This document shows positions 1 through 46,005 of a DNA stretch of 64,000 bases, in pieces. A program made the position numbers and the translations under genes. The number at the start of each line of letters is the position of its first letter. Positions within the stretch are counted from its first letter, which is position 1. The stretch is from IMG/VR virus record IMGVR_UViG_3300047499_000113, positions 124,001-188,000 of that record; one strand, 5' to 3'. Under the pieces are notes generated by a model that saw only the letters and a program-made list of their open reading frames with translations, searched no databases and was not told the DNA's origin.

Positions 1-3000
1 CTCCCGGAGAGCCTTGTGGTCCGATCGGACCCGTAGGTCCGGTTGCACCCGTGACCCCAGGAGAGCCTTGCGACCCGACCGGGCCGGTAGCACCTGTTGG
101 TCCTATGTCACCAGTCGGTCCTTGAGGACCCGTGGCCCCTGTGACGCCAGGTGAGCCCTGCTCACCTTGGGGTCCAGTTGGACCCGTGGCTCCAGTGACT
201 CCATCAGCACCGGTAGCCCCTTGCGGACCGGTTGCACCCGTCGGCCCGATATCGCCAGTCGGACCTTGAGGACCTGTAGCGCCAGTAACTCCAGGAGATC
301 CCTGATCGCCTTGCGGACCGGTTGCACCCGTGACGCCGGGAGAACCTTGCGGCCCGATGGGGCCTGTAGCACCGGTGACGCCAGGTGAGCCCTGCGGTCC
401 TGTGGCGCCGGTTGCTCCGTCAGCTCCCGTTGCTCCTTGCGGCCCAGTTGCCCCGGTAACACCCGGTGAGCCTTGAGGACCTGTTGCTCCTGTAACGCCA
501 TCTACTCCGGTGGCTCCTTGAGGCCCGGTAGCACCGGTTGGGCCAATTTCTCCAGTTGGACCCTGCGGCCCAGTGGCGCCAGTCACCCCCGGTGAGCCCT
601 GATCGCCTTGCGGACCTGTCGGTCCAGTGGTGCCTGTCACACCATCGGCGCCAGTGGCTCCTTGTGGTCCGGTAGCGCCCGTGACTCCAGGAGACCCTTG
701 TTCACCTTGCGGGCCGGTCGCGCCCGTAGCACCGTCCGCTCCGGTCGCTCCTCGAGGACCGGTGGCGCCAGTCACACCATCAAAGCCAGTAGCACCCTGC
801 GGACCAGTCGCTCCGGTAACTCCCGGGCTGCCCTGATCGCCTTGCGTACCAGTTGCTCCCGTGGGCCCAATGTCTCCCGTGGGCCCTTGCGGTCCAGTCG
901 CTCCTGTAACGCCCGGCGAACCCTGCGGACCGAAGTCTCCAGTCGGGCCCTGAGGCCCGGTGGCTCCAGTTACACCATCTGCACCGGTCGGGCCCTGCGG
1001 ACCTGTGGCGCCCGTGGGACCGATATCGCCAGTTGGACCTTGTGGGCCGGTGGCTCCAGTGACTCCGGGTGACCCCTGCTCCCCTTGAGGCCCTGTCGCG
1101 CCCGTGACTCCATCAGCGCCCGTAGGACCCTGAGGACCAGTTGCTCCAGTCGGTCCAACATCACCAGTAGGACCCTGGGGACCTGTCGCGCCCGTAACTC
1201 CGGGTGAACCCTGATCACCTTGTGGACCCGTAGCACCCGTGACGCCATCAACTCCGGTAGCCCCTTGAGGTCCGGTGGCGCCGGTAACTCCATCGACACC
1301 TGTCGCGCCCTGAGGGCCTGTCGCCCCGGTAACGCCCGGCGAGCCTTGGTCTCCTTGCGGGCCGGTGGCTCCAGTAACTCCTGGGCTACCTTGATCGCCC
1401 TGCGGGCCCGTGGGACCGGTCGCGCCTGTGACACCGTCATTGCCCTGTGGTCCAGTGGCGCCCGTGGGTCCGATGTCACCAGTAGGCCCTTGAGGTCCTG
1501 TCGCGCCCGTAACTCCAGGAGATCCCTGGTCTCCCTGAGGACCCGTAGCGCCGGTCGCGCCATCAGGTCCAGTTGCACCCGTAAAGCCATCGGCACCAGT
1601 CGGTCCCTGTGGGCCAGTAGCTCCGGTGACTCCATCGGCACCCGTAGCCCCTTGTGGGCCGGTGGCTCCGGTGATACCCGGCGAGCCTTGATCACCTTGA
1701 GGCCCAGTTGGACCGGTGGCACCCGTGGCTCCGTCTGGACCCGTGGCTCCTGTGACTCCTGGAGATCCTTGATCGCCCTGGGGTCCAGTCGCTCCCGTAA
1801 CTCCGGGGGAACCCTGCGGTCCAGTCGCTCCTGTGGGACCAATATCACCAGTTGGTCCTTGGGGTCCTGTGGAGCCAGTAACCCCATCAGCTCCCGTCGC
1901 ACCTTGCGGTCCAGTTGCTCCGGTGACTCCGGGTGAACCTTGATCGCCTTGCGGACCTGTCGGACCGGTTGCCCCATCAGGTCCTGTGGCTCCCGTCACT
2001 CCCGGAGATCCCTGCTCACCCTGAGGGCCGGTCGCTCCCGTGACGCCATCGTTCCCCTGTGGACCGGTCGCTCCGGTCACACCAGGAGAGCCCTGATCGC
2101 CATGAGGCCCGGTGGCGCCCGTGATGCCTGGCGAGCCTTGAGGTCCTGTAGCGCCAGTTGGCCCTATATCGCCTGTCGGGCCATGCGGTCCAGTTGCACC
2201 CGTAACCCCCGGACTACCCTGATCGCCTTGAGGCCCTGTCGGACCGGTCGCGCCTGTAACTCCATCGGGGCCAGTGGCTCCGGTTGGACCGATATCACCG
2301 GTTGGACCTTGAGGACCCGTAGCGCCGGTCACACCTGGCGAGCCCTGATCGCCCTGTGGACCCGTGGCACCGGTCACGCCGTCCGGACCGGTGGCGCCCG
2401 TGACTCCATCGGCACCCGTTGGGCCTTCAGGCCCTGTGGCGCCAGTAACGCCATCAACTCCGGTGGCGCCCGTGACTCCAGGCGATCCTTGATCACCCTG
2501 CGGCCCAGTCGCACCGGTGACTCCATCAACACCAGTTGCGCCTTGTGGGCCAGTAGCGCCGGTGGGCCCAATATCACCAGTCGGACCCTGCGGTCCAGTT
2601 GCACCCGTAACACCATCGGCACCCGTGGAGCCCTGAGGTCCTGTAGAGCCGGTGACTCCATCTGCTCCTGTCGGACCTTGGGGTCCAGTTGCACCTGTGA
2701 GCCCAGGGCTGCCTTGGTCCCCCTGCGGCCCGGTCGGTCCCGTGGCTCCAGTCGGACCGACATCACCGGTTGGTCCTTGAGGTCCGGTTGCGCCCGTGAC
2801 TCCTGGCGAACCCTGATCACCTTGTGGGCCGGTGGCTCCGGTAACACCGTCAGCTCCAGTTGCACCTTGAGGTCCGGTAGCGCCCGTGACTCCGTCAACA
2901 CCAGTCGGTCCCTGCGGACCTGTTGCACCAGTAACCCCAGGAGAGCCCTGATCACCTTGTGGGCCAGTCGGTCCAGTGGCGCCTGTGACTCCGTCCGATC

Positions 3001-5935
3001 CTGTCGGACCTTGTGGACCAGTTGCACCAGTGACACCATCATTGCCTTGAGGTCCAGTAGCGCCCGTGACGCCCGGCGATCCCTGATCTCCTTGCGGACC
3101 CGTGGGGCCGGTGGCTCCGGTAACACCGTCATTTCCTTGCGGCCCGGTGGCGCCAGTAACGCCGGGGCTGCCCTGATCTCCTTGCGGACCCGTTGCACCA
3201 GTAACCCCGGGAGAGCCCTGATCGCCTTGAGGCCCGGTGGCTCCAGTCGGACCTACGTCGCCGGTCGGTCCCTGCGGTCCGGTAGCCCCTGTGACACCGT
3301 CCGCACCAGTTACTCCTGGGGAACCTTGGTCACCTTGTGGGCCCGTTGCGCCAGTGACGCCAGGAGAACCCTGATCGCCTTGAGGCCCGGTGGCTCCAGT
3401 CGGACCTTGCGGGCCCGTAGATCCTGTGACCCCACCTTGCCCTGTGGCGCCTTGAGGTCCAGTGGCGCCTGTAACGCCAGGAGAACCCTGAGGTCCGGTC
3501 GCTCCGGTGACCCCAGGAGACCCCTGATCCCCTTGAGGCCCGGTCGGTCCGGTGGAACCTTCTGGACCAGTTGCACCAGTGACTCCGTCAGCTCCCGTAG
3601 CCCCTTGAGGTCCGGTCGCGCCGGTAGGCCCGATACCACCCGTAGGACCTTGAGGCCCGGTTGCACCTTCAGGACCAGTGGCCCCGGTGACTCCATCCGG
3701 ACCTGTGGCTCCAGTGACTCCAGGACTGCCTTGGTCGCCTTGCGGACCTGTGGAGCCGGTAACACCATCAGGACCTGTCGCTCCTGTGGCTCCGTCAGCT
3801 CCCGTGGCGCCTTGAGGACCTGTCGCTCCAGTGACCCCAGGCGATCCCAGATCACCTTGGGGGCCAGTAGGACCGGTGGCGCCCTGTGGCCCAGTGGCGC
3901 CCGTTACGCCATCCGCGCCCGTAACTCCTTGCGGTCCGGTAGCGCCGGTGACACCTGGACTTCCCTGATCTCCCTGAGGTCCGGTCGGCCCTGTAAATCC
4001 AATTTCTCCGGTTGGTCCTTGGGGACCAGTAGCTCCAGTGACACCCGGTGAGCCTTGTGGACCGGTCGTGCCAGTAACACCATCAGGACCCGTGGCGCCT
4101 TGTGGGCCCGTCGCTCCAATAGGACCGATGGCGCCCGTAGGACCCTGAGGCCCTGTCGCTCCGGTCACTCCAGGTGAACCCTGTTCGCCTTGAGGCCCAG
4201 TGGCTCCGGTCTCTCCTTGTGGACCAGTTGCACCTTGAGGCCCAGTCGGACCCGTGGCGCCAGTAACGGTTTGGCCTTGGGGTCCTGTCGCTCCGGTAAC
4301 TCCCGGCGATCCTTGCTCGCCTGCAGGACCAGTCGGGCCAGTTGCACCCGTAACACCGTCTGCGCCCGTGGCACCTTGAGGACCAGTAGGACCGGTGGCG
4401 CCCTGAGGACCGGTTGCACCGGTGACTCCCGGGGATCCCTGCGCACCGATAGGACCAGTCGGGCCAGTTTCACCCTGAGGCCCAGTCGGGCCAGTTTCAC
4501 CCTGAGGCCCAGTAGCTCCCGTGCTTCCAATCGGACCGGTCGCTCCCTGCGGACCAGTGGACCCCGTCACGCCAGGAGAGCCCTGAGGCCCAGTGGCGCC
4601 CGTGGGTCCGGTCGCACCCTGCGGACCGGTGGCTCCAGTTACTCCCGGGGATCCCTGTGGTCCGATTGCACCAGTTGGACCGGTGGACCCAGTGACTCCG
4701 GGAGAACCTTGAGGGCCAATCGGACCTGTAGGCCCGGTCTGTCCCTGAGAACCTGTGGGTCCGACAGATCCGGTGGGTCCAATGCTGCCAGTCGGACCCG
4801 TGGGGCCGGTGGCACCTTGAGGGCCAGTTTCACCTTGTGGACCCGTCGGTCCAGTGGGTCCCGTGTAACCGGGCCCAGTAGCGCCCTGCGGCCCAGTCGT
4901 CCCCTGCGGCCCAGTCGGACCCGTCGCGCCAGTAACTCCGTCCTGCCCAGTCGCGCCCTGAGGACCTGTCGCTCCTTGCGGACCGGTCTCTCCTTGCGCG
5001 CCAGTCGGTCCAGTGGGGCCAGTATAGCCAGGGCCCGTCGCGCCTTGCGGACCGGTCTCTCCTTGCGGTCCCGTGGGCCCGGTCGCGCCCGTGGTGCCGA
5101 CAGGTCCGGTCGGCCCAGTCGGTCCGATCTGACCTGTGGGACCTTGCGGTCCGGGAAGTCCAGTCGCGCCTCGAGGGCCAGGAGTGCCTTGGATGCCCTG
5201 CTGCCCCTGAGCGCCAGTCGCGCCGGCGGGACCCGTGGGTCCTGTTGCGCCTGTGACGCCGTCGATTCCCTGCGGCCCAGTCGAACCCTGCGGACCGGTA
5301 GACCCTTGGGATCCCGTGGGTCCAGCGACACCAGTTGGCCCGACCTGCCCAGTCGGACCCTGAGGACCCGTAGCGCCCTGCGGACCGGTCGCCCCTGTGA
5401 CCCCGGGCGAGCCCCGCGGCCCAGTCGAACCCGTGGGTCCTTGCGGACCAGTCGCTCCTTGCGGACCAGTTTCGCCCTGGGGACCGGTGGGCCCGACTGC
5501 TCCCGTGGGGCCGGTGGCACCTTGCGGGCCGGTCGTTCCGGTGACGCCGGCGGAGCCTTGCTCACCCGCCGGGCCAGTGGGACCAACTGCGCCCGTAGGA
5601 CCTTGCGGGCCGGTCGCTCCTTCAGGACCAGTCGCTCCCGTAGCACCTGGCTCACCAGCCGGACCAGTCGGTCCTGTCGCGCCAACGCCAGTCGGACCCG
5701 CAGGACCAGTTGCGCCCTGAGGACCGATGTCGCCTGTCGGACCAGCTTGTCCAGTAGGCCCTTGCGGACCGATTTGACCAGTGGGACCCGCGGGACCGGT
5801 CGCGCCCTGCGGACCGATAGGACCCGTCGCGCCAGTCCCTCCCTCGGGCCCAGTAGGACCCAACGGACCGGTGGCTCCCGTGGGGCCAGCCGGACCAGTC
5901 TGGAGGTGTCGGCCGCGAGGGTTCTCAATGCCCAT
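1..5935 (-). CDS. Giant collagen-like (Gly-X-Y) fibre protein, truncated by the left window edge (>1,978 aa)
   Basis: ATG at 5935 ([24 protein letters not shown]...), 4 nt after the stop of the upstream ORF. The same frame still reads GPQGSPG at positions 22-2. This frame is missing from the ORF track, consistent with no stop before the edge. Repeats include [17 protein letters not shown] and GPTGDIG. Confidence 0.93.
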
Positions 5936-5939
5936 CGGC

Positions 5940-7223
5940 CTACTCGCTTGATGCTGTGAGCGTAATCCCTATGGTCCCGGGTGCTCCCGGCACTCCACCT
6001 TCAGCCGCAACCAGCCTCACAGTCGTGGCGCCGCCTGGAACGACTGCCTCGATCATGAAGGTGATGGCCGCGCTCGAGGCAGGTATCGGTCCTTCTAGGT
6101 CCTGCAGGTACGTGTTTTGGAGTGAGAACGGCTGCTGCGGTGTGAAGTCCAGATCGATGAGCGTCGATTGAGCCTCGTCGGTCCCGTTGCCCCAGCGCAG
6201 CTGCAGCAGCGCGTAACCGCCCGGAGCGCCGTAAGAATAGGTCACATAGAAACAAATCTTCTTGATGCAGTCCGGGATGATGTATGGGGGCTGGTTGGTG
6301 AAGTTCCCGGACGGCGGCAAGCCCTGCGTCAGCAGGTGGATAGTGCGAGGCACCTCCACTTCGCAGCAGGACTTGGGCGGGCAGGGAGGCGTCGGCACAA
6401 CAGGAGGCGGAATAAATGGCGCACACGGAATCGGACTGCACCCGCCGCTGCCGCATGCTCCCGGACACGGCTCGCAGGTGGCAGCGTAGACGATCCTCGA
6501 GAAGAGTGGCCGAGTGGGCGTTGGGCAGTTCTGCAAGAACAGCGAGCTTTCGCACAGAACCGGCACGACGACCGAGTATGGAGCGCCAAGGTCCACGACG
6601 CTGAAACCAGCCCGCGCAGACTTCATCGGTGTCGATTGATCAGCCTGCCACTCCCACAAGCAGATGTAGTTGCCGCTGCAGAGCGAGACGAAGTATGGAG
6701 CGTAGTAGGCCCCCGTCGCGCTGCACATCGCCGGCGTGCGCGGATGGAGGCAGTTGCCGACAGTGTCGAGGATAGTGAAGAAAACCGCGAACGCGCTCTG
6801 CGGGAACCCGCTCTGGTTTTTCAGATAGAGCGTCAGGTCTTTCGGGCCGAGCGCTTGCCCGGACAGGAACGTGAACTGTCCTTGCGCCGGAATGTCGTTT
6901 GGTTGCAGTCGGCAGCGCTCATAGTCTGCCGGGTCAACGACGAAGATGAAATCCGTGTGGCATACGGTCGGGCCACCGAATTCCTGCATCACCTCCCAAA
7001 CGACTTTGTAGTTGCCGTTGGGGACGTTGGTGAACCAAGGAGCGTAGTAGCGACCAGTGCTTTGACGGATCGCCGGCAAACCGCGGCCAGAAACCTGCTG
7101 CCCGTCTCTTGCGTAGACGGTCCATTTGACTGAGGCGGCATCTTGAGCGTATCCGTTCGAGTTACTGAGGAATAACTGAAGATCGCCTCTCGACAGATTG
7201 CTTCGGACGAGAAAGGCCGCCAT
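5940..7223 (-). CDS. Probable virion/fibre-associated protein with two internal repeat domains and a Cys/Pro-rich linker
   Basis: 427-aa ORF. Duplicated unit DLxLxLxNxxG...TGxYYAPxF...GNYxxxWE, then linker CEPCPGACG...PPCPPKSCC. Directly upstream of the collagen gene. Confidence 0.6.
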
Positions 7224-12206: not shown

Positions 12207-12641
12207 CTAGACGATGAGCTTGTCTTTCTTCGTCTCGGCGATCTTGGCGTCGAAGGTCGGAGCAGCCTCAAGGCCCCTGTCCTTGATGGCCTGAGACTTG
12301 GCTTCTTCCCAGGTGCCGGTCTCCTCGCCCTTGTAGTTGGGGAGTGCCTTCTTCGGCGGCCCGTACCTGTCGAGCTGGCGCTTTCCGGCGGCCTCGGCTG
12401 CCTTTTGGCGATACTGCTTGAATCTGTTGCCCTTGGACGGCCAGGAACCCGTGGGACCATCCTTCAGGACGATGTGCGGAGCGTACGGAACCCACTTGTA
12501 GTTGCAGGGGTCTCCGCACTGCACGCACGGAGGGTGCACGGCCCGCATGTCGTCCTTGATGGAGACCTCGACCTCGAAGACGGTTCGGTTTCCATCCGGG
12601 CCAAGGCACCCATCGTTGGTGCACTCGTACGTGTAGATCAT
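12207..12641 (-). CDS. FmdB-like zinc-ribbon protein
   Basis: MIYTYECTNDGC...FEV...PPCVQCG matches the Y-x-Y-x-C...C-x-x-C-G pattern of the FmdB (CxxC_CxxC_SSSS) family. Confidence 0.7.
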   Translation of the reverse strand: MIYTYECTNDGCLGPDGNRTVFEVEVSIKDDMRAVHPPCVQCGDPCNYKWVPYAPHIVLKDGPTGSWPSKGNRFKQYRQKAAEAAGKRQLDRYGPPKKALPNYKGEETGTWEEAKSQAIKDRGLEAAPTFDAKIAETKKDKLIV

Positions 12642-12649
12642 GGGCTACT

Positions 12650-14059
12650 CTACTGCTGCTCTTGCTGGCCCTGATCCTGGCCTTCCTCTTCCTCGGATTC
12701 CTCTTCCTCGGGCTCTTCCGGAGCCTCGTAGTCCGGGGTCTCCTCTTCCAGTTCGGAGAGGTCGACCTCGTACTCGGGCAATCCCTCTTCCTCCTCGAGA
12801 GCGTCCTTGACCGCCTCGTAATCCTCGGTCTCCTCCGGGATCTCGTAGTCGGGCTCCTCGGCGGGCGGCTCGTAGTCGGGCTCGAGTTCGGAAAGATCGA
12901 CTTCGTACTCCGGGAATTCCTCTTCCTCTTCGGCCTCGGGCTCTTCGGCGGCCTCCGGTTCGAGACCTCCCTCAGGCTCTTCCTCCCAATCGATTTCGAT
13001 CTCGGGGTCTTCCTCCTCGAGGTCCTCGATGGGAACTTCCGCTTCTCCCTCGAGCCTGTCCCAATCCTCGTCGACAACGTCGAGGATTTCGTCCGAATCC
13101 TTGTCCCAGTTCTCGTCGACGATCTCCTCCATGAAGTCGTCGAGTCGCTTGAGGACCGAGTATGCGTGCTTGCACAGGAAGTATTTCCTGTCGGGATCGC
13201 GAACGTCCGGCGGCGCGGCCGTGCCGAATGGCTGGCCGAGCATGTATGAGTTTTGCGATGCGTGGAACTCCGGGCCGTTGTAACGCCAGAACGGACAGTC
13301 ACATGAGAGCGCGACCTTGTCCACGTCCGACAGCGACGCTTGGACCACGCGAGCACCATGACCGCAGTTGACCGAGAACGTAAAGATCCGGCTCTTCTTG
13401 TCGTAGCTCGTGAGCGAAACGCGGCAGCTCTGCGCGTTGCGCTTGATCTTCTCGGGAACTCTCGGCTCGAGTTCTTCCGGCTTCATCGCCTGACGTCGTG
13501 CCCGCCAGGGAAGCTCCAGCAGGGCTACCAGCTGGATCGAGGAGTGCCGAATCGGCTTCTCCTTGGTCCTGTACGGATAGTCCCAATACTGGGTGATGTC
13601 GACATCTTCGACGAATGTCGTGTCGGTCGGGGTCTGGATGTTCTCGTCGTACTGATATTCCTGGTGGTGAGTGACCGAGTCGGCCTCGCCGTCCTTCGTG
13701 TCGAAGATCGATCCGGGTTCCGAGGACGGAATCGTGGGCTCGTTGTCCTCGTACTTGAACGTCTTGGTTCCGAACCAGTCGGCCTCGTTCTCGCCACCGT
13801 CACCGAGTGGAGTGGCACCGTCCGCAAAACGCCGGCGCGCAATCCGACTCGCCAGATGGCGTCGAGATGCAACCTGGATCGTCTCGACCTTGATCGGAAT
13901 GAGGAAGAGAGGCTTGAGATGATCCGGAATCGCCGCCGCGAACGAGATGATGTCGGGATACACCTCCTGGCAAAGGAACGCGTACTGCGCTGCCTCGCTC
14001 AGGATGAATCCGTGCGGGAAATCCTTCTTGTCGGACGCCTGCTGCGAGTTGCGGATCAT
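12650..14059 (-). CDS. SWIM zinc-finger protein with very acidic C-terminal tail (probable virion/internal protein)
   Basis: LSCDCPFW...LCKHAYSVL is a CxC...CxH SWIM motif. Glu-rich tail with repeated PEYEVDLSELE. Confidence 0.7.
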   Translation of the reverse strand: MIRNSQQASDKKDFPHGFILSEAAQYAFLCQEVYPDIISFAAAIPDHLKPLFLIPIKVETIQVASRRHLASRIARRRFADGATPLGDGGENEADWFGTKTFKYEDNEPTIPSSEPGSIFDTKDGEADSVTHHQEYQYDENIQTPTDTTFVEDVDITQYWDYPYRTKEKPIRHSSIQLVALLELPWRARRQAMKPEELEPRVPEKIKRNAQSCRVSLTSYDKKSRIFTFSVNCGHGARVVQASLSDVDKVALSCDCPFWRYNGPEFHASQNSYMLGQPFGTAAPPDVRDPDRKYFLCKHAYSVLKRLDDFMEEIVDENWDKDSDEILDVVDEDWDRLEGEAEVPIEDLEEEDPEIEIDWEEEPEGGLEPEAAEEPEAEEEEEFPEYEVDLSELEPDYEPPAEEPDYEIPEETEDYEAVKDALEEEEGLPEYEVDLSELEEETPDYEAPEEPEEEESEEEEGQDQGQQEQQ

Positions 14060-14454
14060 TTGTCGACCTCGTAGTCGTACTCCGGGGCCGATGCCCGCTG
14101 CTGAGGAGTAGGCTGTCGCCCGGTCCTGCGCGGAGTACGGAGCCGCACGTCCTCCAGGACGCGCTCCAACTCGTCAACCTTCTCCGGCCTCAGAACTTGT
14201 CGCAGTTCTTCGTAGTCGAACTTGTCGACTGCCATGGCAGCAGCCTGGAGAGCGCGCTCGAGCTTGAGCATGCACTCTGGCACGGCATGGATGATGTCGC
14301 CCGCCACAGCGTAGAAGTGATCTCGCTGTGGCGAGGCATGCACCAAATCCAACGCTCGGACTACGTAGCTCTTGAGTTCGTCCGCACGCAGGCGAGCATC
14401 GGATAGCTCCTCCTGAATGTAGAGACTCACATGAGCCGTACGTTTGGTGCTCAT
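14056..14454 (-). CDS. Hypothetical helical protein (probable head-associated)
   Basis: 132 aa, overlaps both neighbours by 4 nt, begins MSTKRTA. Confidence 0.65.
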   Translation of the reverse strand: MSTKRTAHVSLYIQEELSDARLRADELKSYVVRALDLVHASPQRDHFYAVAGDIIHAVPECMLKLERALQAAAMAVDKFDYEELRQVLRPEKVDELERVLEDVRLRTPRRTGRQPTPQQRASAPEYDYEVDK

Positions 14455-14963
14455 ATTTGTCTCGATGCTCGGAGCCTGAGAATGGCGTCAACTGCTGCCT
14501 GAGCCTCTTCAGGTGTCATCCAATCAGACTTCATTCGATTGCAAAAGCCGCAGCAAGAGACAACGTTTCCGATTACATATCCGACGTTGCTGTTGAGACG
14601 ATCGAGGCCACAACCTTTCTTCACCGGCTCACCAAGTTTGCCCTTGCAATAATAGCAAGGTTGACTCACCAGAATGATATATGACTCCAGAGAGAGAGTG
14701 AATTCAAGCCCACGATCTCGAGCTACCCATTTGGCTTTCTGGTATCTTCCACGAGCTGTACCGACATACTTGTGTCGACCAGCAATAGTCGCCGGTTTTT
14801 TATTGTGGCACTCGTAGCAGACATTGCTTCTTCCGTCCTTAAGACGCTTGTTTGGCCGGAAAAGCGCAAGCGGTTTGTCGAGACCACACTTGATGCAGTT
14901 TTTAGCTCTGACTTCCTCCTCGGGAGCCATAGGCATCAACTGATGAACAGTCGCCTCCGCCAT
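14451..14963 (-). CDS. HNH-type (His-Cys) homing endonuclease
   Basis: CIKCG...CYEC zinc motif, then PCYYC...GLDRLNSNVGYVIGNVVSCCGFCNRMKS. Visibly AT-richer than its flanks. Confidence 0.8.
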   Translation of the reverse strand: MAEATVHQLMPMAPEEEVRAKNCIKCGLDKPLALFRPNKRLKDGRSNVCYECHNKKPATIAGRHKYVGTARGRYQKAKWVARDRGLEFTLSLESYIILVSQPCYYCKGKLGEPVKKGCGLDRLNSNVGYVIGNVVSCCGFCNRMKSDWMTPEEAQAAVDAILRLRASRQI

Positions 14964-15003
14964 TTCGGTTTAGGCGGCCCATCAAAGTCTTGGGGCCGCC
15001 CAA

Positions 15004-16107
15004 TCAGGCGCCGAACTGCTTGGGATACGTCTTCTCGAGCATCTTGCGCATCTGGTCGCCCTCGGCGGCATAGAGAGCCTCGAGGAACTGCTGGGATGCG
15101 CCGTGCTTCTTGACGGCATCCATGCGGTCCTTGAGCTTGCCCGTGAAAGACCAATCCGCCGGGAAGTCCGGGTCGATGCGCCGGGCCATGCGGATCTTGG
15201 GCGGCAGCTTCGTGTCGATCTTGACGTCCTTGGACGTCGCCTTCACGGTCTTGCCGTTCTTGGCCGCGGCGCGCTCCGCACGGATGTTGCTTGTGTCGGC
15301 GACGCTCACGCCCTCGGCGTTGCCCATACCCCTCGAGGAATGGCGCACCTTGCCGACGACCGTGCCCTCGTTCTCGTCCCCGATCTCGACAGGGGCATTG
15401 CGGTTCATCCTGCTGGTCGTGCGGATGTTGATGCCCTCCTGCTCGGTCTCTTCGTACTGCTGACGAAGCGGAATGGCACCCGACCCGGCGATGTTGTCGA
15501 GCCGATGCTTGAGCTGCGATGCCCCAGCCGACGTCATGTCGATCTTGCCAGCATTGGCCGGCGTACGCAGGCGCGCGACAGGCGTGTAGTCCTGCTCCTC
15601 GATAGCGCCCGGATTGACGACCAGGCCGCTCGACTTCCAGCCGGTCTTCTTGGGCTGCGGCCGATTGGCGGAGGTGATCACGCGCGGTTGCGCCCGGATG
15701 TTGCGGCCACCGGGGTTGTGCATGTCGGCCCGAGCCTCGGGGCGCCTGTCGGACACGTGCATCACCGTGTCCTCGTCCATACTGTCGGTCTCCATCGAGT
15801 TGGCCTCGTGGCGCTGCACGCGTTGGAGATCCGTGTTCTTCGTCTGCGACTTGGCCACCTGGCGCGACGGCACCACCGCAGCCACGTGACCATCGATCTC
15901 GGCCTCGTCGTCGGTGAACCACCCTTGGTTGACGGACGACCGGAGGCTCGGGCCGATGGGGAGGTCCATCCCGGCGTATTTGAGCAGAGTCCCGTCGTAC
16001 TGGACCTGTTCACCCTTGTCGATGGTGACGCTGTGTGGGCCACCAAGACGAATCTTCATCTTGGCGTAAAGGGTGACGAAATCGTTGCGTTGCCAACGGA
16101 TGTCCAT
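15004..16107 (-). CDS. Hypothetical protein (probable late/virion protein)
   Basis: 367 aa with AAGGAG RBS and strong GC3 bias. Confidence 0.75.
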   Translation of the reverse strand: MDIRWQRNDFVTLYAKMKIRLGGPHSVTIDKGEQVQYDGTLLKYAGMDLPIGPSLRSSVNQGWFTDDEAEIDGHVAAVVPSRQVAKSQTKNTDLQRVQRHEANSMETDSMDEDTVMHVSDRRPEARADMHNPGGRNIRAQPRVITSANRPQPKKTGWKSSGLVVNPGAIEEQDYTPVARLRTPANAGKIDMTSAGASQLKHRLDNIAGSGAIPLRQQYEETEQEGINIRTTSRMNRNAPVEIGDENEGTVVGKVRHSSRGMGNAEGVSVADTSNIRAERAAAKNGKTVKATSKDVKIDTKLPPKIRMARRIDPDFPADWSFTGKLKDRMDAVKKHGASQQFLEALYAAEGDQMRKMLEKTYPKQFGA

Positions 16108-16170: not shown

Positions 16171-16578
16171 CTACCGAATAACCCGGCGGGGCGGCGCGCT
16201 GGTCACCACGTCCTGGTCCGATTCCTGCGGCTTCTTCGTGCCTGGCTCGCGCCGAAGTTCCGTGATGAACTCATCGACATCATGCTTGAGGCTGCGCAGA
16301 GCGGGGACGAGCTTGTCGGGCTCCTCGGTCTTGCGCACGAACTTCATCGCTTCCTCGACGTCCTTGCCCTCGTCGGTGTCCCAAATCGACAGCTCGACGT
16401 CATCGGCGGCGATGGAAAGTATTTCTCGAGCGACGCGCTCGATGCGCTGCTGACGACACAGCGCCGAAGCGAGGAGCTTCAGGTCTTGGCGGACGAGGGT
16501 GTTGCTGGGCTGCTCACTGGCGTCGATCTTGGTTGCAATTCGACGCAGAATAGAGGCTACCTTGTCCGGCGCGAGCAT
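16171..16578 (-). CDS. Small probable internal-head protein with VAxILRxIA...PS...V..DL module
   Basis: Start chosen at ATG 16578 (MLAPDKVASILRRIA), just downstream of the putative late motif. Module shared with the 24274-25230 protein. Confidence 0.65.
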   Translation of the reverse strand: MLAPDKVASILRRIATKIDASEQPSNTLVRQDLKLLASALCRQQRIERVAREILSIAADDVELSIWDTDEGKDVEEAMKFVRKTEEPDKLVPALRSLKHDVDEFITELRREPGTKKPQESDQDVVTSAPPRRVIR

Positions 16579-16638
16579 ACTTCCCTGGGGCATAAAAACC
16601 TACGTAAATGTCTGTTCGAATAAGGTACGAGGCGGCCA

Positions 16639-18636
16639 ATGCGGAAGCGTTTCTTCAAGTTCACAATCGGGGCGGTTCTATTCGTGATGCTCCTGTTCGT
16701 GGGCTTGTGGTTGGTAGCCCCCGTTTTCGCCAAGAACAAGGCAATCGAGCGGGCCCAAGCGATGGGCCTGACAATGACTGTGAACTCCGTGAATCACTCG
16801 GACGGCGGTTACCTGTTCGAAGGGATTCACATCAGCTCCAAAGAGCTGCCCATCGAAGCCGACATCGATCAAGCGATGGCGATTGTCGATGGATCGAAGC
16901 TGCGCGCTCTGACCGTCCACGGTGGGAAGGTCGTCGTCCACGGGAGAGTGTCCGAAGTCCGCGGTCAGTGGCAATCGTGGCGAGACAAACACCACGGCAA
17001 TGGCAGTGGTGAGAAGGCCGTCATTATGGCCGACAAACTCCAGCTCACGTGGCAGGCACCATGTGGCGGAGACGATGCTTCTGCTACAGGCGTTTCGGTC
17101 AACAACACGGACCTGGTCGTGCAAGCGAGCGATGTAACCGCAAGTTGCCTCGGGTGGAAAGCCCACTCCACTGACGTGAAGGCATCTTTGCAGAGTGTGG
17201 AAATCGGCAAGCTCGAGATTACGCGTTCCGGAGCAACAGGGCCAGCAACCACGTCACCCAGGAACCTCGACACCAGAGAGTTCCCCGTGCAGGGGTCCAT
17301 TCCAAACCTGGTCGTCAGAGAGCTGAACGTCGACGACAAGCCCCACACGCTCCACGCGAAGAACCTTGTGTTCCGCGGCGATTCCGACTCTGGCGACACG
17401 GCGTACACGAAGTTCTCCTTCGACGAGATGGAGGCTGACCTTCCGAAGGTTCACAAAGTGAGTCTCGGGAAGACTGGGACCGAGGGCTGGCTGAGTGACT
17501 TGTCGTCCGGCGGATACGCGCTCTTCTCCTTCACCGTGAAGTCGGATGGAGCCCGCGGCAAAGTGCAAGGCGTCACAGGCAATCGGGTGACCCTAGGGAC
17601 AACGGAGTTGGTCCTCGCAGGAAGCCTGCCTCCGGATTCTACGTGGAAGTCACCGCATGTTCTCTTCGACGAGAGAACCCACGTGAAAGTGGAAGAGGTG
17701 CAGGTCAACTTCAAGGGTGAGTGGAAACCCGGTCGACTGCAAGCTGACGTAGAACTCCCCGACACGGACTGCCAGAAACTCCTTGACGCGGTTCCAGCGG
17801 GAATGAACCGAGCCATCATGGGTTTGAAGATGAAGGGCTCGGCGGAAATGCAGCTCCACGTCGAGAAAGACGACAACCTCGCCGAACCCGTCGTGAAGCT
17901 CCACCTGTTCGATCACTGCAAGGTCACGAGTCCGCCGGATGGGGCTGACCGAGCCACACTGCGATCGAGCTTCATGCGTGTAGTGCAAGGCCCGATGGGA
18001 GAGGGTGTCGAAATCCCTACGGGACCAAGCTCAGGCAAATGGATGCCGCTGGGCGATATGTCACCCTTCCTCGTCGATGCCATCCAAGTGACGGAGGACC
18101 CGGGCTTCTTCGGTCACTACGGATTCGAGCCGTCCGCCATCGAGAACTCGCTCAAGACGGACATTTCGCTCGGTAGGTTCGCACGGGGCGCGAGCACGGT
18201 CACCATGCAGCTCGCCAAAAACCTGTGGTTGTCGCGCGAGAAGACCATCGCCAGGAAGATCCAGGAAGCCTTCCTCACCATCTACCTCGAGCAGACGCTC
18301 TCCAAGCAAGAGATTCTGGAGACGTACTTCAACGTCGTCGAGTTTGGACCGATGGTGTACGGCATCACGGACGCGGCCAACTTCTACTTCAATACTATTC
18401 CGTCCAACCTCACACTCTCGCAGGCGCTCTTCCTGTGCTCGATTCTACCCAACCCCAAGCAGAATTGGTTCGGGGCAGACGGGCAGCTGCAACCAGGTCG
18501 GCTCAAGTGGCTACAGACGCTCATGGTCGCACTCGAGCACCGTCATCTCATCACGCAGACGCAGTATGAAGAGGGCGTGACCGAGATTCCCGTTCGAGGA
18601 ATGCCGAAGCCGGCGCGTGCACTAGCGCTTGAATGA
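16639..18636 (+). CDS. Membrane-anchored monofunctional peptidoglycan transglycosylase (GT51, MtgA-like C-terminal domain)
   Basis: N-terminal TM helix. GT51 motifs TEDPGFFGHYG, GASTVTMQLAKNL, RKIQE, KQEILETYFN and YGITDAANFYF. No transpeptidase domain. Confidence 0.92.
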   Translation: MRKRFFKFTIGAVLFVMLLFVGLWLVAPVFAKNKAIERAQAMGLTMTVNSVNHSDGGYLFEGIHISSKELPIEADIDQAMAIVDGSKLRALTVHGGKVVVHGRVSEVRGQWQSWRDKHHGNGSGEKAVIMADKLQLTWQAPCGGDDASATGVSVNNTDLVVQASDVTASCLGWKAHSTDVKASLQSVEIGKLEITRSGATGPATTSPRNLDTREFPVQGSIPNLVVRELNVDDKPHTLHAKNLVFRGDSDSGDTAYTKFSFDEMEADLPKVHKVSLGKTGTEGWLSDLSSGGYALFSFTVKSDGARGKVQGVTGNRVTLGTTELVLAGSLPPDSTWKSPHVLFDERTHVKVEEVQVNFKGEWKPGRLQADVELPDTDCQKLLDAVPAGMNRAIMGLKMKGSAEMQLHVEKDDNLAEPVVKLHLFDHCKVTSPPDGADRATLRSSFMRVVQGPMGEGVEIPTGPSSGKWMPLGDMSPFLVDAIQVTEDPGFFGHYGFEPSAIENSLKTDISLGRFARGASTVTMQLAKNLWLSREKTIARKIQEAFLTIYLEQTLSKQEILETYFNVVEFGPMVYGITDAANFYFNTIPSNLTLSQALFLCSILPNPKQNWFGADGQLQPGRLKWLQTLMVALEHRHLITQTQYEEGVTEIPVRGMPKPARALALE

Positions 18637-19317
18637 GATCTTGCTCGGCTCCTTCGCATCCTCGATGAGACTATCGAGGTATGGAAGAACGTCCTTGTTG
18701 GGCGCGAGCTTGAAGGGACCGAGCCACTTCACCTCGGCATCGTCGAGCTTCTGGATCGACTCGTCCAGATTCAGAGGGTCGACCTTCGAAATGTCGAGGA
18801 ATCCGACCTCCGTAGGGTCGGCGAGCCGCTGCCGTTCCGGCAGGAACATATTTTCGGGACCGCTCGTGAAATGGATGGCCCGGAAGACGAACGTCCAGCG
18901 AGTATTCTTCGGCACCGGATAACCAGTGCGCATCTGGAATGCAACGCTGTGGCGCGAGATCGACTTGTCGAAATCGGGCATCAGCGCGAACGCGTAGCGC
19001 TTGTTCTTCTGCCGCAGGTGAAAGTGGAACCACTCGGTGGGCTTACCCTCGGCCCACATTTTGAGGTGCTCGACGATGTTGTCCGCATCCTTCATCAGGA
19101 AGACGGGTCGCATCTCGTAGTCGGTGTCCGACTTGACGTTGTGCTTGAACCAGAGACAAGCCTCGGCGGCTCCGCTCGGAAGCTGATCGAGGCCCTCCAT
19201 CAGCTCCGCGGTCCGCTCGGGCGGGATGAGCTGCATTGGGTCTCCCACCAGCAAGGGAACGTAGCTGATGAGGACGATGGACATCCCGGGCGACTTCTCG
19301 TCCTTGGGCTTACTCAC
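18622..19317 (-). CDS. Hypothetical protein
   Basis: 231 aa. TACTTT -10-like box 5 nt before the GTG. Confidence 0.7.
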   Translation of the reverse strand: MSKPKDEKSPGMSIVLISYVPLLVGDPMQLIPPERTAELMEGLDQLPSGAAEACLWFKHNVKSDTDYEMRPVFLMKDADNIVEHLKMWAEGKPTEWFHFHLRQKNKRYAFALMPDFDKSISRHSVAFQMRTGYPVPKNTRWTFVFRAIHFTSGPENMFLPERQRLADPTEVGFLDISKVDPLNLDESIQKLDDAEVKWLGPFKLAPNKDVLPYLDSLIEDAKEPSKISFKR

Positions 19318-19355
19318 CGCGGAAAGTACGCCGCCCGGGATCTGGACTTACGCGG

Positions 19356-20471
19356 TCAGGCCGCTTCTTCGGACTTGTCCCAATCCGGCACCTCGTACAG
19401 GAGCCTCGTGCCGGCGACCAGGGAGCGATTGGCCGAGGTCGACTGAACGAAGACCGCGTACTTCTCGAAACTCACCGGCTTGAGCTTCACGTCCTCCCGG
19501 TCTTCACCCTTGCGCTCGCTCTGCGGAGGAAGCTCGAGCATTTCGCGCACTTTGGCGCCGTTGAAGATGTCGCCCGTGGACTTGTCCATGAGCACGATCT
19601 CCTTGAAGCCCTGAACGGTCTCGGCCTTCGTCAGCTCGTAAAATCCGCGACCCTTGCGGAACTCGACGCCCTGATCGCGGACGAAGTCGGCGATGCCCTG
19701 CTTCTTGTCGACGGGCAGGATTTGGAACCTGCCGGCCGGAACCGCATGCAGCGAGGCGTCGCCGGCGGCGAACGCGGGCTTGCGACCCAGCAAGATCGAG
19801 ATGATCTTGTCCAGGTTGCGGTTCATGCGCTTGTCTTCCTTCAGCTCCTTCTCGAAGCCCTGGAGCTGCTCGTCGCCACCCTGCTTGTAGCAGACGGCCA
19901 TGATGAGGTCGTTGATGGTCGCGAACTGGTCGAGCGTCAGGTAGAATCCGCCAGTCTTCTTGGCGATCTCCTCGTAGAAGCTCTTGGAGTGCTTGCGGCA
20001 GCCCGGCATCGCGTGGACGCCGTAGACGTTGATGCCCGCCTCGAGCAGGAGTCCCAGCTCGTTGCGCCAGTCGATCTTCTTCTTGTTGTCCGGATACGTC
20101 GGTCCGTGCGGGACGTCGTCGCCGATCATCACCAGGACCTTCGACTTGCCCGAGGTCCACTTGAGAGTGCGCGCCTGGTGGAGCACCAGCTCGTAGCACT
20201 CCGGGGAGTCCCCTCCGCCCGTGGGCTCCACCTTGTCGATGAAAGACGTGACCTTCTTCACGTCGTCCGTCAGATCGAGGATCTTGGTGACGTACGAACT
20301 TCCAGCGTCGCAGTAGTCACCGTGAGCGATGACTCCCATCCGGAGCCCTTCGATGTCTCCGAAAAGCCGCTTGGCGGTGTCTTTGCAGTTTCGCCTCACC
20401 TGAGTGAGGCATGGGTACATAGACCCCGTGGTGTCGAACGTCAGGACCACATCGATCGAGGATTTGCCCAT
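19356..20471 (-). CDS. von Willebrand factor A (MIDAS) domain protein
   Basis: DVVLTFDTTGSM MIDAS motif, GGGDSPECYE and VMIGDDVPH. Start at ATG 20471 has a GGGAG RBS. Confidence 0.88.
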   Translation of the reverse strand: MGKSSIDVVLTFDTTGSMYPCLTQVRRNCKDTAKRLFGDIEGLRMGVIAHGDYCDAGSSYVTKILDLTDDVKKVTSFIDKVEPTGGGDSPECYELVLHQARTLKWTSGKSKVLVMIGDDVPHGPTYPDNKKKIDWRNELGLLLEAGINVYGVHAMPGCRKHSKSFYEEIAKKTGGFYLTLDQFATINDLIMAVCYKQGGDEQLQGFEKELKEDKRMNRNLDKIISILLGRKPAFAAGDASLHAVPAGRFQILPVDKKQGIADFVRDQGVEFRKGRGFYELTKAETVQGFKEIVLMDKSTGDIFNGAKVREMLELPPQSERKGEDREDVKLKPVSFEKYAVFVQSTSANRSLVAGTRLLYEVPDWDKSEEAA

Positions 20472-20519
20472 GCGGATACTCCCTTCTTGAAAGGGAGTGT
20501 ACAGGCGCACGGTCGAGAT

Positions 20520-21290
20520 CTACGCATTCGGGGCGGCCTGGGGAGCGATGTAGGCGCTGATATCCACGCCCGAAGAGTGGGCTCCCGTGGCCAGCTGGAT
20601 GGCCGTCGAACGCGCCGTGTCAGGGTCCATGCCCTGCGTCCGAAGGAAAATATAGAGGTTGAGCCAAGCCCCGTCCGCGTGACCGAAGTAGTGGTGCGCG
20701 TAGATCCCCGGCGCCAGGCTATTGCATGGCGCGTACGGACCCATCACTAGGGTGTTGCCGTTCAGGCCGCGAAATGTGAGGGGAATAGTCAGGTTGGACG
20801 CCGGCGTCAGCATCCAGAGTACCAGCTTGAAAACTGACTCTGCTTGCTCCGGTGTAGGGACCAGGTACTTGCCGCCGGCTGCCCAAGGAGCGTTGGTGAT
20901 GATGTCCTTCCACGGACTATTCTTGGGAGCCAAGCTGGGTTCGTAAGGGTTGACAGTCTCTATTCCGACTGACGGGCCATTGTGCTGGCTCCCATGCCAC
21001 AGCTCATCGGTCAGCAAATCCCCGTGCTGGTAGATGGTGCCGTCGTAGTCGGCGATGAAGTGGACACCGAGCCCACGGCCGCCAGGATTCGACGGCGACG
21101 ACGGCATCAGGACTTGTACGGTCTCTTGCCAACTCGACGTAACAGTCTCGTGCACCACCGCTTCGGTCACGGGACCAGTACGTTTCTGGTTGACGAACCT
21201 GTAGACCGAGGGGTCGGTGAAGTTCTTCAGGCGCACACCATCGGGCCCCTCGAGCGCAACCCCGTTGACGATGACACCAGCAGCAACCAT
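20520..21290 (-). CDS. N-acetylmuramoyl-L-alanine amidase (Amidase_2-type; endolysin or virion lysin)
   Basis: AVVHET, GVHFIADYDGTIYQ, WHG...NGPSVGIE and YAHH. The ORF-track N-terminus is the antisense of the 2H gene, so the start was set at 21290. Confidence 0.82.
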   Translation of the reverse strand: MVAAGVIVNGVALEGPDGVRLKNFTDPSVYRFVNQKRTGPVTEAVVHETVTSSWQETVQVLMPSSPSNPGGRGLGVHFIADYDGTIYQHGDLLTDELWHGSQHNGPSVGIETVNPYEPSLAPKNSPWKDIITNAPWAAGGKYLVPTPEQAESVFKLVLWMLTPASNLTIPLTFRGLNGNTLVMGPYAPCNSLAPGIYAHHYFGHADGAWLNLYIFLRTQGMDPDTARSTAIQLATGAHSSGVDISAYIAPQAAPNA

Positions 21291-21332
21291 CACAGCCAAA
21301 ATGGGTATCGGACCTTTATCACGGGCGGAGAC

Positions 21333-21842
21333 GTGGCGTTCATAGGGATGCGGCTGCCATCGATCGCAGCGACCAATCTTTCGGAGATTCCCGTCCCCGG
21401 CGAAGCGACACCACTGCGTGAAATGCATGTGACGTTGGCTTTCTTGGGAAACCAAGTGCCGATGGAGCAGGTATTCCGGTCCCTCGCGTGCTGCTACCTG
21501 GTTGCGCAGGAGTACGCACCTCTCGAGCTGACTGCAGCACTGTTGATGAGCTTTCCGGCCGACCCGGAAGGGCGAATCCCGGTCATCGCTCGAATAGTGA
21601 CCCCGCAGCTCTTCGACATGAGAGCGCGTTTGGTCCAGTTGCTTGAAATGAATAAGGTGGAGTATTCCAAGCGCCACCCGCAGTACAAACCACATGTGAC
21701 GCTGTCGTACGCGCAGCAGGCAGTGCCACCGCAGAAGATCAAACCGCTACGCTGGCCGGCACAGTGGCTCACAGTGTGGGGCGGCGACGAAGCGGATCAG
21801 CTTTTCTCTGCGGAAATAGAACTCCGCGGGCAGAAACGCTGA
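21333..21842 (+). CDS. 2H phosphoesterase (LigT/ThpR or Acb1-like)
   Basis: Two HxT motifs, MHVTLAFLG and YKPHVTLSY, about 80 aa apart. Start uncertain (GTG 21333 or ATG 21348). Confidence 0.88.
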   Translation: MAFIGMRLPSIAATNLSEIPVPGEATPLREMHVTLAFLGNQVPMEQVFRSLACCYLVAQEYAPLELTAALLMSFPADPEGRIPVIARIVTPQLFDMRARLVQLLEMNKVEYSKRHPQYKPHVTLSYAQQAVPPQKIKPLRWPAQWLTVWGGDEADQLFSAEIELRGQKR

Positions 21843-25243: not shown

Positions 25244-25255
25244 ATAAACAGCCTA
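25244..25255 (-). promoter_or_regulatory. Putative phage late-promoter motif TAGGCTGTTTAT (representative copy)
   Basis: Near-identical copies precede many virion genes (54643-54654, 55593-55604, 44162-44173, 12191-12202, 11113-11124 and others). Confidence 0.55.
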
Positions 25256-25789
25256 GGTCAGGTCGACGAGCTGGAAGTACCGAGACGGAACGTGGTCGGT
25301 GAGCCAGACTCCGTTGGTCGACAGGAAGAACTTGTAGCCGTCACGGAACATCTGGTCTGTCCAAATCTCGAGAACTATCGGGTTGCGACGACGCCGAGCC
25401 ACGATGAGGGCAGTCTTCACGTCCGGAGACATGTGGACGTGGTGACGCTGCATCTTCTTCAGGCCCTCTTGCTCGAGAACATCGAGGATGTCCTTCGACG
25501 TGCCGTGATACAGGCAATCCGGTGGTTCCTTCTCTTCGTACTCGAGGTCGACTTCCACCGAATGACCCTGGCAGGCACGAATGCGAGTCTTGTCCTCGTT
25601 GAATTCGAACCGCTTCTTGTTGTTGTCGCGAACGACCGCCTCGAGGTCGTCCATTGACCATTTCATCGCCGGCAGGAGCGCAGCGACTTCGACCCATCCA
25701 GCCGAATCGAGCGTGAGGCCGACGCTCTCGGGCTGATGGCGGAGCACCAGGCTCAGATGCTTGCTCTTGTGGACGAGAGGGTCTTTCAT
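25253..25789 (-). CDS. kptA: RNA 2'-phosphotransferase (KptA/Tpt1)
   Basis: SKHLSLVLRH, NNKKRF, RIRACQGHS, LYHGT, GLKKMQRHHVHMS and NGVWLTDHVP are the canonical Tpt1 motifs. Confidence 0.95.
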   Translation of the reverse strand: MKDPLVHKSKHLSLVLRHQPESVGLTLDSAGWVEVAALLPAMKWSMDDLEAVVRDNNKKRFEFNEDKTRIRACQGHSVEVDLEYEEKEPPDCLYHGTSKDILDVLEQEGLKKMQRHHVHMSPDVKTALIVARRRRNPIVLEIWTDQMFRDGYKFFLSTNGVWLTDHVPSRYFQLVDLT

Positions 25790-45971: not shown

Positions 45972-46005
45972 GAGGTCGCTCTCGCACAGCCTTCAAAAAG
46001 GCCAA

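Follow-up and report, generated by a model that had tools for sequence, protein, structure and literature searches.

A megaphage gene encoding a GT51 peptidoglycan glycosyltransferase fused to a predicted AsmA-like lipid-groove domain

Phages are known for enzymes that cut peptidoglycan, and the presence of a gene for a peptidoglycan chain-building enzyme in a viral genome raises the question of whether such a gene is intact, whether it truly belongs to the phage, and what it might do there. We investigated one such gene in a 64,000-nt window (positions 124,001 to 188,000) of the 240,015-bp IMG/VR virus record IMGVR_UViG_3300047499_000113. A preliminary description made from the sequence alone had noted GT51 motifs including the catalytic Glu of TED, a TM anchor and a ~450-aa extracytoplasmic region, and these observations are confirmed. 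The features of the window referred to below are as follows, with positions numbered within the window.

16629-16632 (+), GAGG Shine-Dalgarno, 6 nt before the ATG at 16639
16639-18636 (+), whole gene, open from ATG to TAA, encoding a 665-aa AsmA-like (predicted)/GT51 fusion protein
16639-16761 (+), residues 1-41, basic N-terminus (MRKRFFK) followed by a membrane-spanning helix, predicted N-in signal anchor
16768-18021 (+), residues 44-461, predicted all-beta AsmA-like (repeating beta-groove, bridge-like lipid-transfer) domain
18031-18588 (+), residues 465-650, GT51 peptidoglycan glycosyltransferase domain
18094-18096 (+), codon of E486, the motif-1 catalytic Glu (TED)
18265-18267 (+), codon of E543, the second Glu in motif 3 (RKIQE)
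12207-16107 (-), conserved upstream block on the opposite strand, with genes of 144, 469 (SWIM zinc finger), 132 and 367 aa, interrupted here by an endonuclease VII gene at 14451-14963
20520-21695 (-), Amidase_2 (N-acetylmuramoyl-L-alanine amidase), probably the endolysin, with the real start probably near residue 140-145 of this ORF
44178-48740 (-), portal (44178-45971) and large terminase (TerL, 46758-48740) genes
60348-61769, clamp loader gene

The identity of the C-terminal domain was first examined by profile search. Pfam Transgly PF00912 matches residues 465-608 with an E-value of 2.1e-45 and 154.8 bits against a cut-off of 27. Alignment to the GT domain of Aquifex PBP1a (3nb6, E 3e-29) places T485-E486-D487 in motif 1 (E486-D487..F490..H493.G495), GASTVTMQLAKN in motif 2 and R539-K540..E543 in motif 3. 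Among 131 family members, E486 is conserved in 131, E543 in 129, and D487, G495, G517, S519, T520, Q524, N528, R539 and K540 in all 131. Motif 2 reads STVTMQ instead of STITQQ, with M in 130 of 131 members, and the effect of this substitution is unknown. Selection on the gene is strongly purifying, with a dN/dS of 0.07 against the 94%-identical orthologue, 0.11 for the N-domain and 0.03 for the GT51 domain. Promoter and terminator scans around the gene were at chance level, and no RNA run holds the locus.

In order to characterize the fold of the whole protein, we predicted its structure with AF2. A first model based on a 7-sequence alignment was poor (pLDDT 59), whereas the model based on 131 sequences was of high confidence (pLDDT 93.4, pTM 0.83). 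The GT51 domain of the model matches 3nb6, 3d3h and 2oqo by Foldseek (TM 0.83-0.85, rmsd 2.4-2.6 Å) and MtgA by VIA-align (Z 19.8), in agreement with the lysozyme-like helical GT51 fold. Compared with the monofunctional glycosyltransferases (MtgA of S. aureus and E. coli) and the GT domain of class A PBPs (Aquifex PBP1a, E. coli PBP1b), the protein has the same catalytic fold, with a TM of 0.84 to Aquifex PBP1a, at 33-36% identity, the same five motifs and both catalytic Glu, and, as in MtgA, no transpeptidase module. It is nevertheless not an MtgA equivalog, since it scores 138.3 bits against the TIGR02070 cut-off of 182.65 and, at 665 aa, carries an extra 420-residue domain absent from the ~240-aa single-domain architecture. 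GT51 enzymes normally have their membrane helix right next to the catalytic domain, whereas here the only hydrophobic helix, at residues ~3-29, lies ~440 residues away from the GT domain, and access to lipid II is thus not self-evident. The N-terminus reads MRKRFFKF followed by a ~22-residue hydrophobic stretch (Kyte-Doolittle 1.73), the model shows a helix at residues 2-41, and the positive-inside N-terminus together with a Cys pair, C378 and C427, invariant in the 131 members, is consistent with a periplasmic location of the remainder.

The preliminary description had not recognised what the long N-terminal region resembles, and this changes the mechanistic picture. In the model, strands run from residue 44 to 461, and Foldseek matched this domain to LPD-3 (probability 1.0), Vps13-N (0.99), Atg2-N (0.99) and TamB (0.82). 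VIA-align gave a Z of 11.9 to LPD-3 over 297 residues, about 3 Z units above the generic beta-barrel background. ESM Atlas neighbours are all AsmA-family, and BFVD gave chorein-N proteins. At the sequence level the support is weaker: the hit of the window protein to DUF748 is far below threshold (13.2 bits against 50) and it does not reach any Pfam threshold of the clan, although, among 33 family members, 10 hit DUF748 (best E 8e-6), 2 hit YdbH-like and 2 hit YhdP. Like AsmA, TamB, YhdP, YdbH and the eukaryotic VPS13, ATG2 and BLTP1/LPD-3 proteins, the protein has an N-terminal membrane helix followed directly by a predicted long curved beta-sheet groove, but the groove is much shorter, ~420 residues or about three repeating-beta-groove units against 600-1300 residues in the bacterial proteins, and it ends in an enzyme domain rather than an outer-membrane contact region.

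These similarities raise the possibility that the main job of the protein is lipid transport, for example supplying outer-membrane lipid for an enlarging cell, with the GT51 module mainly binding glycan strands or lipid II as a tether rather than polymerising. Indeed, AsmA proteins transfer glycerophospholipids in vitro (PMC13542527). However, the near invariance of both catalytic Glu and the other motif residues, and the lowest dN/dS being found in the GT51 part, fit catalysis and not mere binding, and with about three repeat units and no C-terminal outer-membrane contact element the groove may be too short to reach the outer membrane. We regard this explanation as very unlikely.

We next asked whether the gene is phage-borne or whether it could be an ordinary host gene on an assembly chimera or on a bacterial, for example myxobacterial, contig misclassified as viral. 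In favour of the latter, the nearest cellular family is found in Myxococcota, the GC content of the window varies from 57 to 69%, and IMG/VR labels one related record a 'provirus'. The data exclude it. Portal (PHROGs E 2e-26), TerL (E 3e-26) and clamp loader genes lie on the same contig, and the gene sits at the same place next to the same phage genes in relatives at 94, 48, 44 and 40% identity, as well as in a further subclade. The upstream block, whose products are predicted to be soluble, with no TM segments found, and are of unknown function, accompanies the GT51 gene in 14-15 of 45 related loci. Independent low-coverage moss-metagenome contigs with zero mismatches bridge both gene junctions, and one run, possibly the source sample, holds the whole stretch in a 111.5-kb contig. 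The high-GC stretch at 1-6000 is a collagen-repeat ORF and not host DNA.

To determine how widely the gene occurs in phages, we searched viral sequence collections. A near-identity DNA search of 20 kb against 50,697 phage records gave only one 640-bp match, to Virus Rctr197k under the VWA gene, and nothing matched the GT51 gene. A tblastn search of the N-domain against the same records gave no match, whereas the GT51 domain matched 57 records, among them bacterial contigs filed as phage and short unannotated fragments. One plausible phage record, the 274-kb Microcystis phage MaAM05 (MW495066.1), carries a gene annotated 'mtgA' that encodes an ordinary bifunctional class A PBP (GT51 plus transpeptidase, 731 aa) without an AsmA-like domain; it is flanked by glyS and gatD and may be host-derived DNA. 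A first scan of IMG/VR with narrow N-domain patterns found only the identical copy, but family-wide patterns found 41 loci (one the identical copy), most on contigs of 130-619 kb, and of the 40 where a GT51 frame was extracted, 36 have their best match in the phage branch. The TerL of four of these phages, of 435-619 kb, is 42-62% identical to that of the window, and two of them are complete genomes of 435-436 kb with direct terminal repeats. Each of these four near-complete or complete genomes has exactly one PF00912 and no PF00905, and no PF00905, YkuD or SLT was found in the 240-kb record. The gene is nevertheless dispensable in some relatives, as a related 485-kb phage (LR745208.1, TerL 44% identical) has no GT51.

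The preliminary description had proposed, tentatively, that the long-N-terminus monofunctional architecture resembles Myxococcota proteins and is a clue to the host. The resemblance is supported. An N-domain profile finds 499 proteins at E<=1e-3, many of which share the architecture; the window protein carries the features of this undescribed family, namely the TM helix, the N-domain with C378/C427 and the GPxxxW linker, and a GT51 domain with the STxxMQ signature. The top 14 GTDB genome hits that extend into the N-domain are all titled Myxococcota/Deltaproteobacteria, the 15th is a 2.3-kb 'Geobacter' MAG contig, and 181 of 301 sampled genomes of the phylum match, often with 2-4 matches per genome. 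These uncharacterised 'transglycosylase domain-containing proteins' (750-900 aa, e.g. NOU27668.1 of a Polyangiaceae MAG) are chromosomal, ~100-200 residues longer, and homologous over the full length, with an ESM Atlas model TM of 0.76 over 599 residues, and they form one clade with the phage proteins relative to other GT51 domains. As a host clue, however, the resemblance is weak: the phage copies form a separate branch (SH-aLRT 99), phage-borne wherever we checked, are only 26-30% identical to the cellular ones, and sit on viral contigs with GC from 36 to 69%. The direction of transfer is also unresolved. The free GT51-domain tree nested the phage clade inside Myxococcota, but the AU test did not reject Myxococcota monophyly (p 0.68) and the constrained tree even had the better likelihood.

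A pairing with the amidase 2 kb away had also been suggested. Although this is the only Amidase_2 in the 240-kb record, an amidase lies within +/-6-10 kb in only 4 of 45 related loci, and the pairing is not backed by conserved linkage. This bears on the possibility that the protein is a lysis-timing or wall-subversion device, in which an unregulated polymerase without a transpeptidase makes uncross-linked strands and drains lipid II by futile cycling, weakening the wall or cooperating with the amidase endolysin. The absence of a transpeptidase from the record and from the four relatives, and the amidase nearby in this genome, would agree with such a role, and several phage lysis proteins appear to act on the lipid II pathway. 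On the other hand, a 420-residue groove domain under purifying selection is more than a simple lipid II sink would need, and the chromosomal Myxococcota homologues argue that the fold is not inherently toxic. We consider this role unlikely. Superinfection exclusion or entry-wound repair, in which an active enzyme thickens or patches the sacculus so that later phages cannot penetrate, is likewise doubtful. It would fit a membrane-anchored periplasmic polymerase made by the phage, and a jumbo-phage review names peptidoglycan modification as a route to block rival phages (PMC7824862), but nothing in the neighbourhood links the gene to known exclusion genes.

Taken together, these data show that the ORF is a real, selectively maintained gene of a huge phage with an estimated genome of ~430 kb, encoding a predicted type-II membrane protein with a short basic cytoplasmic tail, one membrane helix, a predicted ~420-residue periplasmic AsmA-like beta-groove and a C-terminal monofunctional GT51 glycosyltransferase. 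With moderate confidence, we infer that the enzyme is probably an active glycan polymerase: after Sec-dependent insertion into the host inner membrane during infection, the GT51 domain would polymerise lipid II into glycan strands, which host transpeptidases cross-link. This would give the phage a wall polymerase of its own, keeping the sacculus intact or letting it grow during a long infection that must house very large virions. The groove domain probably positions the polymerase away from the membrane, handles the undecaprenyl-linked substrate, or both.

A more speculative possibility, which we consider unlikely on present evidence although it is not excluded, is that the fusion is a groove-fed, off-membrane peptidoglycan polymerase. 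The AsmA-like groove would lift undecaprenyl-linked lipid II, or the growing lipid-linked chain, out of the inner membrane and deliver it to a GT51 domain held several nanometres away at the level of the sacculus, and megaphages would use it to build or enlarge the host wall independently of the host's regulated synthases. If so, bridge-like lipid-transfer folds would have a role in polyprenol-linked glycan handling, and phages of this lineage would actively construct cell wall.

A survey of 103 viral genomes found no GT51 (PMC3541169), and neither a 224-genome jumbo-phage comparison (PMC7824862) nor a 2026 review (PMC13282480) mentions a biosynthetic transglycosylase; we found no published description of a phage GT51, of an AsmA-GT51 fusion or of huge-phage peptidoglycan synthesis, and no published function for the Myxococcota proteins. 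The gene is a good marker for this phage lineage, and a few short contigs binned into 'Synergistetes' and 'Geobacter' MAGs that carry it may be phage fragments. The fusion of a predicted bridge-like lipid-transfer fold to a probable lipid II polymerase is also undescribed for bacteria, and it offers a testable idea about how polyprenol-linked substrates might be handled away from the membrane, as well as a function-finding handle for a large uncharacterised Myxococcota protein family. In the phages themselves, a probable wall polymerase is a conserved, strongly constrained gene across a lineage of the largest known phages, which points to active maintenance or remodelling of the host envelope as part of the megaphage lifestyle.

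The gene lies in a single open frame of 665 codons, with a GAGG 6 nt before the ATG, and its setting was defined by the following features, listed by window position.

2-5935 (-), running off the window start: giant ORF of at least 1978 aa made almost entirely of collagen Gly-X-Y repeats (Pfam Collagen E 2.5e-282, 11 stretches), probably a fibre or whisker protein
14451-14963 (-): endonuclease VII / HNH-type gene
16639-18636 (+): GT51 gene
19356-20510 (-): VWA-domain gene, containing at 19818-20458 the only DNA-level match to a deposited phage
20520-21695 (-): Amidase_2 gene, the only one in the record and probably the endolysin
25253-25789 (-): Tpt1/KptA RNA 2'-phosphotransferase gene (Pfam E 4e-50)

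Pfam places a Transgly (GT51) domain at residues 465-608 of the encoded protein with an E-value of 2.1e-45, 154.8 bits against a threshold of 27. NCBIfam scores the protein like the GT module of PBP1a and MtgA but below every equivalog cut-off, and PHROGs gives only a weak hit to an unnamed family. Alignment to the solved Aquifex PBP1a GT domain (E 3e-29) lines up T485-E486-D487...F490..H493.G495, which is motif 1 with the catalytic Glu, G517-A-S-T-V-T-M-Q-L-A-K-N, which is motif 2, and R539-K-I-Q-E543, which is motif 3 with the second Glu. The N-terminus is MRKRFFKF followed by about 22 hydrophobic residues, and this predicts an N-in anchor with the rest of the protein outside the cytoplasm. 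The observation in the preliminary description, of intact GT51 motifs with the catalytic Glu, a transmembrane anchor and a long extracytoplasmic region, is therefore correct in every particular.

In order to establish whether the gene belongs to a phage or to a host chimera, we examined its genomic context. The window is bases 124001-188000 of a 240,015-bp IMG/VR virus record that CheckV rates 56% complete, implying a genome near 430 kb, and it also holds a portal, a large terminase, a clamp loader and an endonuclease VII. The 67-69% GC of the first 6 kb is explained by the collagen-repeat ORF. No tRNA or tmRNA gene was found by ARAGORN in the window or in the whole 240-kb record, which is unusual for a phage of this size, although the record is only ~56% complete. 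The single DNA-level match to a deposited phage, within the VWA-domain gene, has 74.7% identity to Virus Rctr197k (KX853510.1, from a nitrate-dependent methane-oxidising enrichment), under a 'conserved hypothetical protein'. An identical copy of the GT51 gene sits on a second IMG/VR contig of 111 kb, and full-length relatives at 94, 48, 44 and 40% identity lie on contigs of 180 kb, 12 kb and 183 kb, and on 16 contigs of up to 439 kb. In all of them the gene follows the same opposite-strand block of about 144, 470, 130 and 360-aa genes, and two further subclades show the same block. The endonuclease VII gene sits inside this otherwise conserved four-gene block and is found at that place in only one other related locus, as expected of a mobile nuclease insertion. 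In relatives, the Tpt1/KptA gene travels with a 2',5'-RNA-ligase / LigT / Acb1-like gene (14632-15204 in L002, the contig with the 94% orthologue, and 14571-15056 in a second relative, L085), which suggests an RNA repair or anti-defence module.

The locus occurs in moss metagenomes from seven studies and, in independent low-coverage runs, error-free contigs bridge both the upstream junction (16463-17753) and the downstream junction (17977-19357) of the gene. Against the 94% orthologue, dN/dS is 0.07 overall, 0.11 for the N-domain and 0.03 for GT51. The data thus show a phage gene, and the alternatives of a host chimera or of a decayed enzyme do not hold.

To further characterize the long N-terminal region, we ran a profile of the N-domain alone against 1.84 billion representatives and found 499 proteins at E<=1e-3, many of which have the same layout of membrane helix, N-domain and C-terminal GT51. 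With 131 of them as the alignment, AlphaFold2 gave a confident model (pLDDT 93.4, pTM 0.83) with a helix at 2-41, continuous beta-strands from 44 to 461 and the GT51 domain at 465-650. Foldseek matches the N-domain of the model to LPD-3/BLTP1 (prob 1.0), Vps13-N (0.99), Atg2-N (0.99), TamB (0.82) and LptD. A Foldseek-independent aligner puts LPD-3 first among non-GT51 hits (Z 11.9, 297 residues), about 3 Z units above a background of generic beta-barrels, with Vps13 and ATG2A near Z 8. At the sequence level, 10 of 33 family members hit Pfam DUF748 (best 8e-6) and others hit YdbH-like and YhdP, all of the AsmA clan, although the window protein itself does not reach any Pfam threshold of that clan. 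ESM Atlas feature neighbours, with GT51 clusters excluded, are all AsmA, DUF748, YhdP or TamB clusters, and the viral structure library returns the chorein-N (VPS13-like) proteins of giant viruses. Together with the model itself, we take these as five concordant lines of evidence for a repeating-beta-groove, bridge-like lipid-transfer fold, and by predicted fold the N-domain is AsmA-like. Two cysteines, C378 and C427, are invariant in all 131 sequences, and we infer that this fits a periplasmic disulfide.

A full-length tree of 144 rows (quick search, LG+G4) splits the family into two groups at SH-aLRT 99. Group B has 102 rows of 700-860 aa with high-GC composition and contains all 14 named Myxococcota sequences, whereas group A has 42 rows of 607-683 aa with composition ranging from very low to high GC and contains the window protein and every sequence whose context we inspected, all of those contexts being phage-like. 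In one genome per GTDB species, the 14 best matches that extend into the N-domain are all titled Polyangiaceae, Polyangiales, Myxococcales or Deltaproteobacteria, and the 15th is a 2.3-kb contig of a 'Geobacter' MAG. The N-domain profile matches 181 of 301 sampled genomes of that phylum, often with 2-4 matches each, but in the phylum of a Vicinamibacteraceae genome it gives only 4 weak partial hits in 121 genomes. GT51 motif 2 reads ST(V/I)(T/S)MQ in 130 of 131 members of the fusion family (position 523 of the window protein), where canonical enzymes have STITQQ, and this is a family signature of unknown catalytic meaning.

In IMG/VR, a family-wide scan found 41 loci, most on contigs of 130-619 kb. 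A GT51 frame was extracted from 40 of them; the encoded proteins are mostly 540-730 aa, 36 have their best match in group A, and locus GC runs from 0.36 to 0.69. Four of these records carry a terminase 42-62% identical to that of the window, namely two complete genomes with terminal repeats (436 and 435 kb), one of 619 kb and one of 529 kb, and each has exactly one GT51 and no PBP-type transpeptidase. The 529-kb relative is labelled 'provirus' by IMG/VR and has a second terminase-like frame with two in-frame TGA codons. The window's own record, as far as it is complete, also lacks PF00905, YkuD and SLT domains. One related 485-kb uncultured phage (LR745208.1), which has the closest deposited terminase (TerL 44% identical), lacks any GT51; the gene is therefore a widely but not universally kept gene of a megaphage lineage. 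Many 'phage' records with PBP genes are bacterial contigs filed as phage (for example 'Acinetobacter phage MD-2021a' and Salmonella WGS contigs) and, conversely, 2-3 kb MAG contigs carrying the phage-type fusion gene (OPZ34992.1 and L019) are binned into 'Synergistetes' and 'Geobacter' MAGs and may be phage fragments.

We also sought to investigate the origin of the gene. Rooted with ordinary GT51 domains, the fusion family is one clade (SH-aLRT 78), and the free tree nests the phage branch inside Myxococcota. However, an AU test does not reject a monophyletic Myxococcota branch (p 0.68) and the constrained tree had the better likelihood, and neither the direction nor the date of transfer is settled. 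The preliminary description had taken the resemblance to Myxococcota proteins as a tentative host clue, but the phage copies are only 26-30% identical to the cellular ones and occur in phages of very different GC content, and the resemblance therefore says little about the present host of this phage. The habitat is moss-associated.

By its catalytic domain the protein is a GT51 member, but it is neither an MtgA equivalog nor a class A PBP. In the literature searched, no paper was found that describes a phage biosynthetic transglycosylase, an AsmA-GT51 fusion or peptidoglycan synthesis genes in huge phages; a 2012 CAZy survey found GT51 in 0 of 103 viruses (PMC3541169), and neither a 224-genome jumbo-phage comparison (PMC7824862) nor a 2026 review (PMC13282480) mentions one. 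The only cultured-phage record with a plausible GT51 carries an ordinary bifunctional PBP next to glyS and gatD. The catalytic family is thus a known one, whereas the architecture is undescribed in the literature searched and the conserved viral setting is unexpected.

The preliminary description had also proposed a pairing with the nearby amidase. The first ~140 codons of the amidase ORF look non-coding (Cys/His/Arg-rich) and the likely start is near residue 140-145, which would give a Gly/Ala-rich, weakly hydrophobic N-terminus (AVMVAAGVIVNGVALEG) like that of signal-anchor-release endolysins. The amidase accompanies the GT51 gene in only 4 of 45 related loci, whereas the upstream four-gene block does so in 14-15, and a functional pairing is therefore not supported. 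Overall, the interpretation given in the preliminary description is only partly supported by our data.

The groove domain is the unusual element of the protein. In canonical GT51 enzymes the membrane helix abuts the catalytic domain, whereas here about three groove units separate them; assuming roughly 2.5-3 nm per unit, as is probably usual for RBG proteins, the separation would be several nanometres. The part of the N-domain nearest the GT51 (residues ~345-468) is the best conserved across distant relatives, and the groove may therefore position the enzyme at the level of the wall, or carry the undecaprenyl-linked substrate to it, although this is speculation.

The features described here define a membrane-anchored, extracytoplasmic, monofunctional GT51 whose catalytic residues are conserved across 131 sequences (E486 in 131/131, E543 in 129/131), with the strongest constraint on the catalytic domain. 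Other roles can be envisaged, such as superinfection exclusion or repair, lysis timing by lipid II drain, or lipid transport with GT51 as a tether, but the conserved catalytic residues argue against the tether idea. We infer that the protein is inserted into the host inner membrane during infection and polymerises lipid II into glycan strands, which host transpeptidases cross-link. No phage transpeptidase was found in the incomplete record or in the four relatives examined. Such polymerisation would give the phage a wall polymerase independent of host synthesis and regulation, and the most likely benefit for a phage with a ~430-kb genome and a presumably long cycle is keeping the sacculus intact, or allowing it to expand, until assembly is complete.
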